64,000 nucleotides of DNA, from NCBI GenBank assembly GCA_964035545.1, contig OZ037773.1, forward strand, positions 8,027,751-8,091,750. Reading direction: 5' to 3'. Positions 28,624-29,454 of this stretch are shown in pieces (position 1 is the first letter of the stretch; each line of letters begins with the position of its first letter). Both the position numbers and the translations under genes were made by a program. The stretch is from Bugula neritina (lineage: Eukaryota > Animalia > Bryozoa). The notes under the pieces were generated by a model that ran no database searches, was not told the DNA's origin, and saw only the letters and a list, made by a program, of their open reading frames with translations.

Positions 28624-28714
28624 AATATATATATATATATATATATATATATATATATATATATATATATATATATATATATATATATATATATATATAT
28701 ATATATATATATAT
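28624..28714. repeat. (TA)n microsatellite, left flank of PLE
   Basis: Direct reading. Confidence 0.97.
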
Positions 28715-28749
28715 AAAATAGAATTGAAATGACACAGTTAAAATTGATA

Positions 28750-28811
28750 AAACATTTTATTACTAATAGTTTCATGTATGTTAAAATATACACTCTTCAG
28801 ATAAAATGTTT
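28750..28811 (-). ncRNA. Minimal type I hammerhead ribozyme (identical inverted copy)
   Basis: Exact reverse complement of 29168-29229, inside the inverted pLTR. Confidence 0.86.
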
Positions 28812-28903
28812 AAATCTACTAAAGGATATATTACATGGTACTATTTAAGTAGTAAAAAGCTGAAAAGCTGGCGGATTAATGATATTTAAAAGAAGGCTGG
28901 TGC

Positions 28904-29050
28904 AATAAAAACTCCCCCCTCTGCCACATATGTCTATGGGAGAAATATTTTATAGTATACAAACCAACATACGCTTCATTAAACACCAGAAGTGATTTTA
29001 TTTCTACATGTAGACATGCAAGGGCATTTGTTTTAGAAAGCGTTACATGA
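28904..29050 (+). pseudogene. 3' fragment of Penelope-like element ORF (GIY-YIG endonuclease C-terminus)
   Basis: 48 open codons ending in TGA, with CHICLWEKYFI...LNTRSDFISTCRH; no start codon, truncated at the inverted pLTR. Confidence 0.8.
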
Positions 29051-29167
29051 GCATTCTATAATCCATACAATATGCTTACCAGCCTTCTTTTAAATATCAT
29101 TAATCCGCCAGCTTTTCAGCTTTTTACTACTTAAATAGTACCATGTAATATATCCTTTAGTAGATTT

Positions 29168-29229
29168 AAACATTTTATCTGAAGAGTGTATATTTTAACA
29201 TACATGAAACTATTAGTAATAAAATGTTT
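29168..29229 (+). ncRNA. Minimal type I hammerhead ribozyme
   Basis: Stem I AAACATTTTAT (29168-29178) / ATAAAATGTTT (29219-29229); core CUGAAGA (29179-29185); stem II GTGTAT/ATACAT with 8-nt loop; GAAAC (29206-29210); tiny stem III; GUA cleavage triplet 29216-29218. Confidence 0.88.
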
Positions 29230-29324
29230 TATCAATTTTAACTGTGTCATTTCAATTCTATTTTATGATATGCTCTGTTTTAAACATTGAGCTCTTTTAA
29301 GCAGCGCACTATATCTCACAGTCA

Positions 29325-29454
29325 TATATATATATATATATATATATATATATATATATATATATATATATATATATATATATATATATATATATATATA
29401 TATATATATATATATATATATATATATATATATATATATATATATATATATATA
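29325..29454. repeat. (TA)n microsatellite, right flank of PLE
   Basis: Direct reading. Confidence 0.97.

Follow-up and report, generated by a model that had tools for sequence, protein, structure and literature searches.

Within the window, i.e. the whole 64-kb stretch of DNA that was analysed, positions 28621-29455 hold, in this order, a (TA)48 microsatellite, a 189-nt arm, a 176-nt spacer, a second, complementary 189-nt arm, a tail and an (AT)66 microsatellite. The layout reported in the initial annotation is therefore real, and the repeat search showed that the arms, 176 nt apart, are 100% complementary over their entire 189 nt. The element is bordered on one side by thrombospondin-repeat exons (25.6-26.6 kb) and on the other by a RING-finger/NHL-like gene starting at 30413.

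Several further observations concern the neighbourhood. ORF fragments on the + strand at 25665-26558 carry thrombospondin type 1 repeat signatures (W..W..C...CGGG) and are probably exons of the upstream host gene. A 22-nt tandem repeat with ~9.6 copies is found just downstream of the element (29811-30023), followed by an (AC)41 tract (30567-30730), which gives a His-Thr run in a mechanical ORF with the RING-finger motif first, at 30413, and by 38/76-nt tandem repeats at 30903-31167. Across the 64-kb window, the only (TA)≥8 tracts are the two bordering the element. The features of the locus are as follows.

28621-28715, no strand: left (TA)48 microsatellite, target-site flank (TRF, sequence)
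28713-28901, - strand: inverted, tail-less, 5'-truncated copy of the 3' UTR, unit ~2176-2368 of 2420 (repeat search, BLAST, alignment)
28750-28811, - strand: minimal type I hammerhead motif of the left arm, predicted cut between 28761/28760 (descriptor; identical to the right-arm motif)
28901-29050, + strand: ORF remnant, last 49 codons and stop of the predicted RT/GIY-YIG protein, with CHIC, E, N and CRH (translation)
28902-29323, + strand: forward 5'-truncated copy, unit ~1998-2420, with ORF end, 3' UTR, hammerhead and tail (BLAST, alignment)
29078-29266, + strand: right arm of the inverted repeat, 3' UTR without tail (repeat search)
29168-29229, + strand: minimal type I hammerhead motif, predicted cut after 29218 (sequence, descriptor, covariation in sister families)
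29267-29323, + strand: tail, 52-57 nt, forward copy only (alignment, BLAST; "tail" as in Craig 2021 and Frangieh 2024)
29324-29455, no strand: right (AT)66 microsatellite, target-site flank (TRF)

Translation of the spacer from 28901 gives the last 49 residues and the stop of an element ORF, including CHIC and CRH, and this fragment differs by a single amino acid from the C-terminus of a 699-aa ORF in a full-length copy (L031, see below). Spacer, right arm and tail together match the last 424 nt of the L031 unit with 98.8% identity, i.e. ~5 of 424 positions differ, while the left arm is the reverse complement of unit ~2176-2368 (BLAST, alignment). The forward copy accordingly consists of the last 49 codons, the hammerhead-bearing 3' UTR and the tail, and the inverted copy of 189 nt of 3' UTR only. 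Since layout, hammerheads and the coding capacity of the spacer (a CxxC...CRH endonuclease C-terminus) were all seen, the earlier description was correct save for small numbers, the fragment being 49 rather than 48 aa long and the tail, given as ~58 nt, measuring 57 nt when delimited by the repeat and 52 nt when aligned by BLAST to the full-length copy, where the differing bases are TA-like and ambiguous. The window copy encodes no enzyme and, without an RT, is a dead relic.

The full-length relative and its encoded protein

At least 99 matching places were found in the source genome (216 Mb searched). Among them is L031, a full-length element on another chromosome, which defines the 2420-nt unit of this 2.4-kb element (L031:2190-4609). 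It opens with (TA)n and ~500 nt of inverted 3' end, continues with a 699-aa ORF free of interruptions, a 3' UTR bearing the same hammerhead and the same tail, and closes with (TA)n again; the flanks of 16 further copies are likewise nearly all (TA)n. No direct repeat was found within the full-length copy L031, and the arms of the window copy are 3' UTR without tail, so that their earlier reading as pseudo-LTRs had to be abandoned.

The tail (window 29267-29323; L031:4553-4609) resembles the short 5' UTR (L031:2190-2237), with GCTC..TTTTA...TTGAGCTCT.TTAA in common. The likeness has a local score of 30, which 5 of 1000 shuffles reach, and would be anticipated if the tail begins a next unit. Among the other copies, L032:1474-4064 (G000:C2:25875973-25878563) is a complex one with several strand switch-backs and a 2-nt overlap at each junction, composed of unit pieces 1658-2420, 600-694, 600-1626 and 1658-2368. 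At two places on one contig, L009/L010 and L025/L026 (G000:C8:2042918-2051054 and G000:C8:658798-666907), two element pieces ~7.5 kb apart were observed with identical match coordinates and identities, which suggests a segmental duplication of >8 kb.

The ORF protein has >3,000 homologues, mostly unnamed and including bryozoan and bivalve proteins, the best of which is 58% identical. Across 12-30 homologues and paralogues, R37-W38, D115-K116 and YRDD are invariant, R37-W38 being followed by K or R, and D115-K116 by T117, which is ≥90% conserved (DKT, not DKG). The linker C560-x-C562-x5-C568 (here CNCRNKNLC) is invariant in 30 sequences; further invariant positions across 12-30 homologues are Y581...Y594-x-G596, R605 and N608-H609 of the nuclease core as well as C658-x-x-C661, E664, N678 and C687-R-H689. 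The core motif letters LIYQ...TYVG, R, NH, E and N are conserved. Between GIY and the conserved E of the nuclease core, no cysteine was found in 12-30 homologues, i.e. the GIY-YIG core is without a CCHH. The Hydra clade of Penelope-like elements (PLEs) was defined by RW(K/R), DKT, a CxCX5C linker and a GIY-YIG domain without CCHH but with CxxC and CxH around E and N, together with canonical hammerheads, a length of <3 kb and insertion into (TA)n (PMC8557442). Every diagnostic motif is present in the L031 ORF, and together with the (TA)n flanks and the modelled RT and GIY-YIG folds this upholds the assignment to a Hydra-type PLE, which the initial annotation had proposed.

Pfam returned nothing meaningful for RT or GIY-YIG on the ORF and 12 homologues, and a PDB sequence-profile search of the ORF detected neither of them, so that both domains rest on motifs and predicted folds. 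The model of the C-terminal 160 aa (pLDDT 85) had GIY-YIG nucleases as its top four structural matches, namely I-TevI (Z 8.8, rmsd 2.4, 89 residues), T4 EndoII (7.8), UvrC (6.2) and PD-T4-3 (5.3), with the next unrelated match at Z 3.5, and Foldseek placed the same GIY-YIG families first, albeit weakly (E 0.14). For the model of residues 140-560 (pLDDT 82), Foldseek gave 322 matches at E≤1e-3, of which the best 50 are nearly all RTs (retron, DRT, TERT, R2 and group II intron). According to these models, the element ORF carries an RT and a GIY-YIG fold.

The source genome contains many further Hydra-type families with 47-65% aa identity, many with open frames (protein search). Inspection of loci showed at least three more Hydra-type PLE families with many 700-aa open frames, each with its own hammerhead variant (L040, L041, L043-L046, L048, L051, L053-L055, L057, L058 and L061-L064). 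In these sister families, the upstream copies are direct at some loci (L040, L045, L064) and inverted at others. In addition, direct tandem short hammerhead units were found near (TA)n at L063:3350-3950, L061:950-1450 and L058:3300-4100, all on the - strand, e.g., with a 186-nt unit, a 272-nt period and 99.5% identity, an arrangement which can be called retrozyme-like.

A minimal hammerhead motif kept in diverged families

Both arms contain the complete minimal type I hammerhead for which they had originally been singled out, as located by a descriptor scan at 29168-29229 (+) and 28750-28811 (-). The motif is built from an 11-bp stem I, CUGAAGA, a 6-bp stem II with an 8-nt loop, GAAA and GUA, with a stem III of 3 bp and a 3-nt loop, and the CUGANGA / GAAA / UH core and stems I, II and III in type I topology are all present. 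In L031, the hammerhead begins 117 nt past the ORF stop. With the descriptor, 240 kb of PLE loci together with the window yielded 57 hammerheads, and 20 shuffles yielded 0. A search with the Rfam hammerhead models, one of the checks proposed from the start, produced no hammerhead match in the 64-kb window at the gathering score, in 631 nt of the element at E≤10 or in six PLE loci, including GC-richer sister families, at E≤1, and returned only (TA)n-driven microRNA look-alikes. We take this as low sensitivity of the models for minimal AU-rich motifs and not as absence of the motif.

The hammerhead motifs form four sequence families, which have the core CUGANGA, GAAA(C) and UH in common and are quite different in stems I and II. 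Without guidance, RNAalifold derived stems I and II from a plain MAFFT alignment comprising 14 variants, and in 8 of 10 pairs both partners had changed. Paired cells amounted to 97.9%, compared with 71.7% in shuffles and 25-64% with slid partners, a percentage inflated by the choice of the set with a pairing-demanding descriptor; the covariation score was 0.80 compared with 0.29, and none of 500 shuffles reached 0.80. At the sequence level, four diverged sister families have retained the hammerhead core at one and the same place in the 3' UTR, with stems I and II that differ in mutually compensating ways. Such abundant compensatory changes within the PLE hammerhead families of a genome have been described before, along with the expectation of low monomer activity (PMC4209133).

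Folded in isolation, the hammerhead reaches about -11 kcal/mol (z -1.6) and is predicted to be marginally stable, which agrees with the poor cleavage reported for minimal PLE hammerheads on their own and with their possible need for a dimer or a protein (PMC4209133; PMC11167929). As the two hammerheads of the window copy are on opposite strands, no dimer can form in cis. Furthermore, a transcript spanning both arms is predicted to form a 189-bp perfect duplex of -336 kcal/mol, which would bury the ribozyme motif and more plausibly feed double-stranded-RNA pathways. The proposal that transcription from either strand yields a self-cleaving motif therefore holds for the motif sequence, which is present on both strands, whereas self-cleavage of read-through RNA is unproven and doubtful given the duplex and the opposite strands. 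The hammerheads of the window copy are intact in sequence, and any ribozyme activity of theirs is putative. In practical terms, the locus is a potential source of long double-stranded RNA ~1.1 kb upstream of the RING-finger gene.

Head-to-head copies and their origin

The same head-to-head design as in the window copy occurs at no fewer than 14 other loci. About 14 of the 16 head-to-head pairs of this PLE family combine one tail-bearing with one tail-less end, in the remaining two the tail is absent on both sides, and no pair has a tail on both. The tail-less ends are always at unit ~2368 and the tail-bearing ends at 2420. With independent choice of the start site, mixed pairs would make up at most half, and 14 of 16 has P ~0.002 (binomial). 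The internal junctions vary, with 0-3 nt overlap in most pairs. At most loci, the two arms have 98.5-100% of their positions in common (86.5% in the older-looking L021), compared with 95-99% between loci, and the arms of the window copy hold common private variants absent from L031 (alignment). As the arms share private variants and exceed the likeness between loci, they point to one template and one event.

Taken together, the locus is very probably a non-autonomous Hydra-clade PLE insertion in (TA)n, in which two 5'-truncated 3' ends are joined head to head. The simplest reading of its origin is two-ended target-primed reverse transcription in (TA)n, followed by an early stop and microhomology joining, for which we infer the following order of events. 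The GIY-YIG nuclease of the element would cleave the (TA)n target on both strands, and reverse transcription of the element RNA would be primed from each 3'-OH. One synthesis would begin at the distal start site, with the tail included, and the other at the internal site, leaving the tail out, and both cDNAs would stop early and be linked by microhomology of 1-3 nt. Our data do not separate two-ended priming from a snap-back in which one cDNA ended before the tail.

Mini copies of this family, ~260 nt long and all in (TA)n, were observed at L066:489-762, L067:504-762, L068:507-775, L069:555-813, L070:507-765 and L071:512-669. In at least 6-7 independent (TA)n loci, their forward part starts at unit 2261-2263 (window 29164-29166), which is 3 nt 5' of the hammerhead stem I base, at a TTTAAA palindrome, and the inverted tail-less arm usually stops at the same point. 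Junction details vary by locus, so that these copies represent independent events with a hot spot. As a tentative and rather unlikely suggestion, the last ~160 nt, comprising the hammerhead and the two RT start sites, may be a discrete retrotransposition cassette. If true, this would imply either a short RNA of defined extent or a fixed point at which cDNA synthesis stops. In both cases, the hammerhead fold would mark the 5' edge of an RNA module which the RT recognises or protects, i.e. it would have a structural role, instead of or in addition to cleaving. Alternatively, the TTTAAA palindrome at the start of the mini copies could favour snap-back or the annealing of two cDNA ends.

For the age of the insertion, the arms give a limited answer. 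The initial annotation had concluded from their identity that the family is recently active; identical arms date only this insertion, and the zero differences in 189 nt do so loosely, or reflect gene conversion. Recent activity of the family is nevertheless supported, on sequence grounds, by the intact ORF and by several mini copies that are 100% identical to L031 over ~159 nt. Over 498 nt, the L031 arms show 1 mismatch and 1 gap, and older-looking pairs have 6 mismatches in 744 nt (L008) and 10 in 334 nt (L021). It is improbable, though worth weighing, that the window insertion is not young and that gene conversion or hairpin-templated repair keeps its close inverted arms identical: arms 176 nt apart have a geometry prone to intrachromosomal conversion, and the differences of the window copy from L031 mean that zero arm differences need not mean zero age, but the family is rich in near-identical copies, including those identical mini copies and the intact ORF, and the L008 and L021 pairs do gather arm differences, showing that conversion is not universal.

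Much less probable is a retrozyme-type non-autonomous element, i.e. one that is no mere relic and spreads by self-cleavage, circular RNA and retrotransposition in trans. Its type I hammerhead with a tiny helix III is as in animal retrozymes, retrozymes have been linked to PLE pseudo-LTRs (Li et al. 2026, preprint), and the direct tandem hammerhead units of sister families described above occur in the same genome. Against this, the window hammerheads are on opposite strands, so that no transcript carries two of them, the locus has neither a direct repeat nor a direct tandem of hammerheads in the same orientation, and its content is the 3' end of an autonomous element, truncated at a point particular to this locus. 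We therefore rejected this reading.

We regard it as scarcely credible that the inverted left arm is an assembly artefact (a fold-back chimera) and that the real locus is a forward truncated copy only. The arms are perfectly identical, and the 28901/28902 junction is bridged by no independent contig in 13 runs (Logan contigs, mostly 60-400 nt on this repeat); yet the same design recurs at the other loci with differing junctions and arm lengths, and in sister families too, the left arm stops at the standard terminus without tail, beyond which come (TA)n and a unique flank unlike the right flank, and head-to-head design is a published hallmark of PLE insertions (PMC8557442). Given the recurring design, the standard terminus and the unique left flank, we rejected this reading. 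In the same collection, two runs guessed to be RNA contain contigs 90-95% alike to the element, which is too weak for a claim of expression (Logan).

A foldback/MITE-type DNA transposon, with terminal inverted repeats around a short spacer and inserted at TA, has practically no probability left: the perfect 189-nt inverted repeat bordered by TA repeats and the short hairpin-like copies of ~260 nt at several loci would suit it, but it is contradicted by the asymmetric ends with a 52-57-nt tail on one side only, by a spacer that is the in-frame C-terminus of the RT/GIY-YIG ORF and collinear with the right arm, by arm lengths and junction points that vary between loci as in 5' truncation, and by the full-length copy, which encodes a reverse transcriptase.

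Taken by itself, the locus in the window is a commonplace dead copy whose practical use is in repeat annotation. Hydra-clade PLEs are known almost solely from consensus sequences in one paper, and the PLE hammerhead may act as a ribozyme or as part of an RNA recognition module. With its several diverged families of Hydra type, in which ORFs run uninterrupted, recent copies are near-identical and insertions are clean, this genome is natural study material for the questions of whether the RT uses different start sites at the two ends, how head-to-head copies are joined and what the hammerhead does.

Comparison with known systems

The head-to-head structure recalls the twin-priming inversions of LINE-1, reportedly described by Ostertag and Kazazian in 2001. 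In both cases, cDNA is primed from both strands, resulting in a head-to-head, 5'-truncated structure with microhomology at the junction. In LINE-1 twin priming, the inverted part is a different, more 5' segment, whereas the window arms represent the same 3' region twice, and because both duplicate this region, the two syntheses would both have begun near the RNA 3' end.

A biochemical counterpart is the Poseidon PLE of Anolis carolinensis (PAc), for which cutting and extension of both target strands were demonstrated in vitro, with two nearby internal RT start sites whose spacing equals the genomic tail (PMC11167929). PAc likewise combines RT and GIY-YIG and has an AT-rich target (PMC11167929), and its hammerhead is also just 5' of the start sites, at ~85-92 nt compared with 53 and 105 nt here. 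Unlike the window family, PAc belongs to the Penelope/Poseidon clade, is arranged in tandem with pseudo-LTRs and has its hammerhead across the pLTR-ORF junction. In vitro, its start site is equal on both strands, whereas the two ends of the insertions described here nearly always differ.

The hammerhead itself resembles the minimal PLE hammerheads (PMC4209133) in its type I topology, the conserved core, a helix III of few pairs and a small near-palindromic loop, but its stem I, known here from sequence, is unusually long (11 bp) and AU-rich. As in animal non-LTR retrozymes (PMC7229834; Li et al. 2026), we are dealing with a short non-coding hammerhead retroelement related to PLE ends; retrozymes, however, are direct tandems giving rise to circular RNAs (PMC7229834), and the window locus pairs two inverted copies, with one hammerhead on each strand.

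The closest agreement is with the Hydra clade (PMC8557442), with which the family shares a length of <3 kb, a single ORF, the diagnostic motifs, the hammerhead, insertion into (TA)n, an inverted upstream copy lacking its 5' part and a tail on one side. It differs from this clade in its tail of 52-57 nt, compared with the usual 30-40, and in having inverted upstream copies only and no direct pseudo-LTR. The window family is absent from the protein collection searched, in which the best match is 58% identical and the named relatives are from a bryozoan and a bivalve. Judged by its motifs, the locus is a well-formed member of a new family within the already described Hydra clade of PLEs and no new kind of element.
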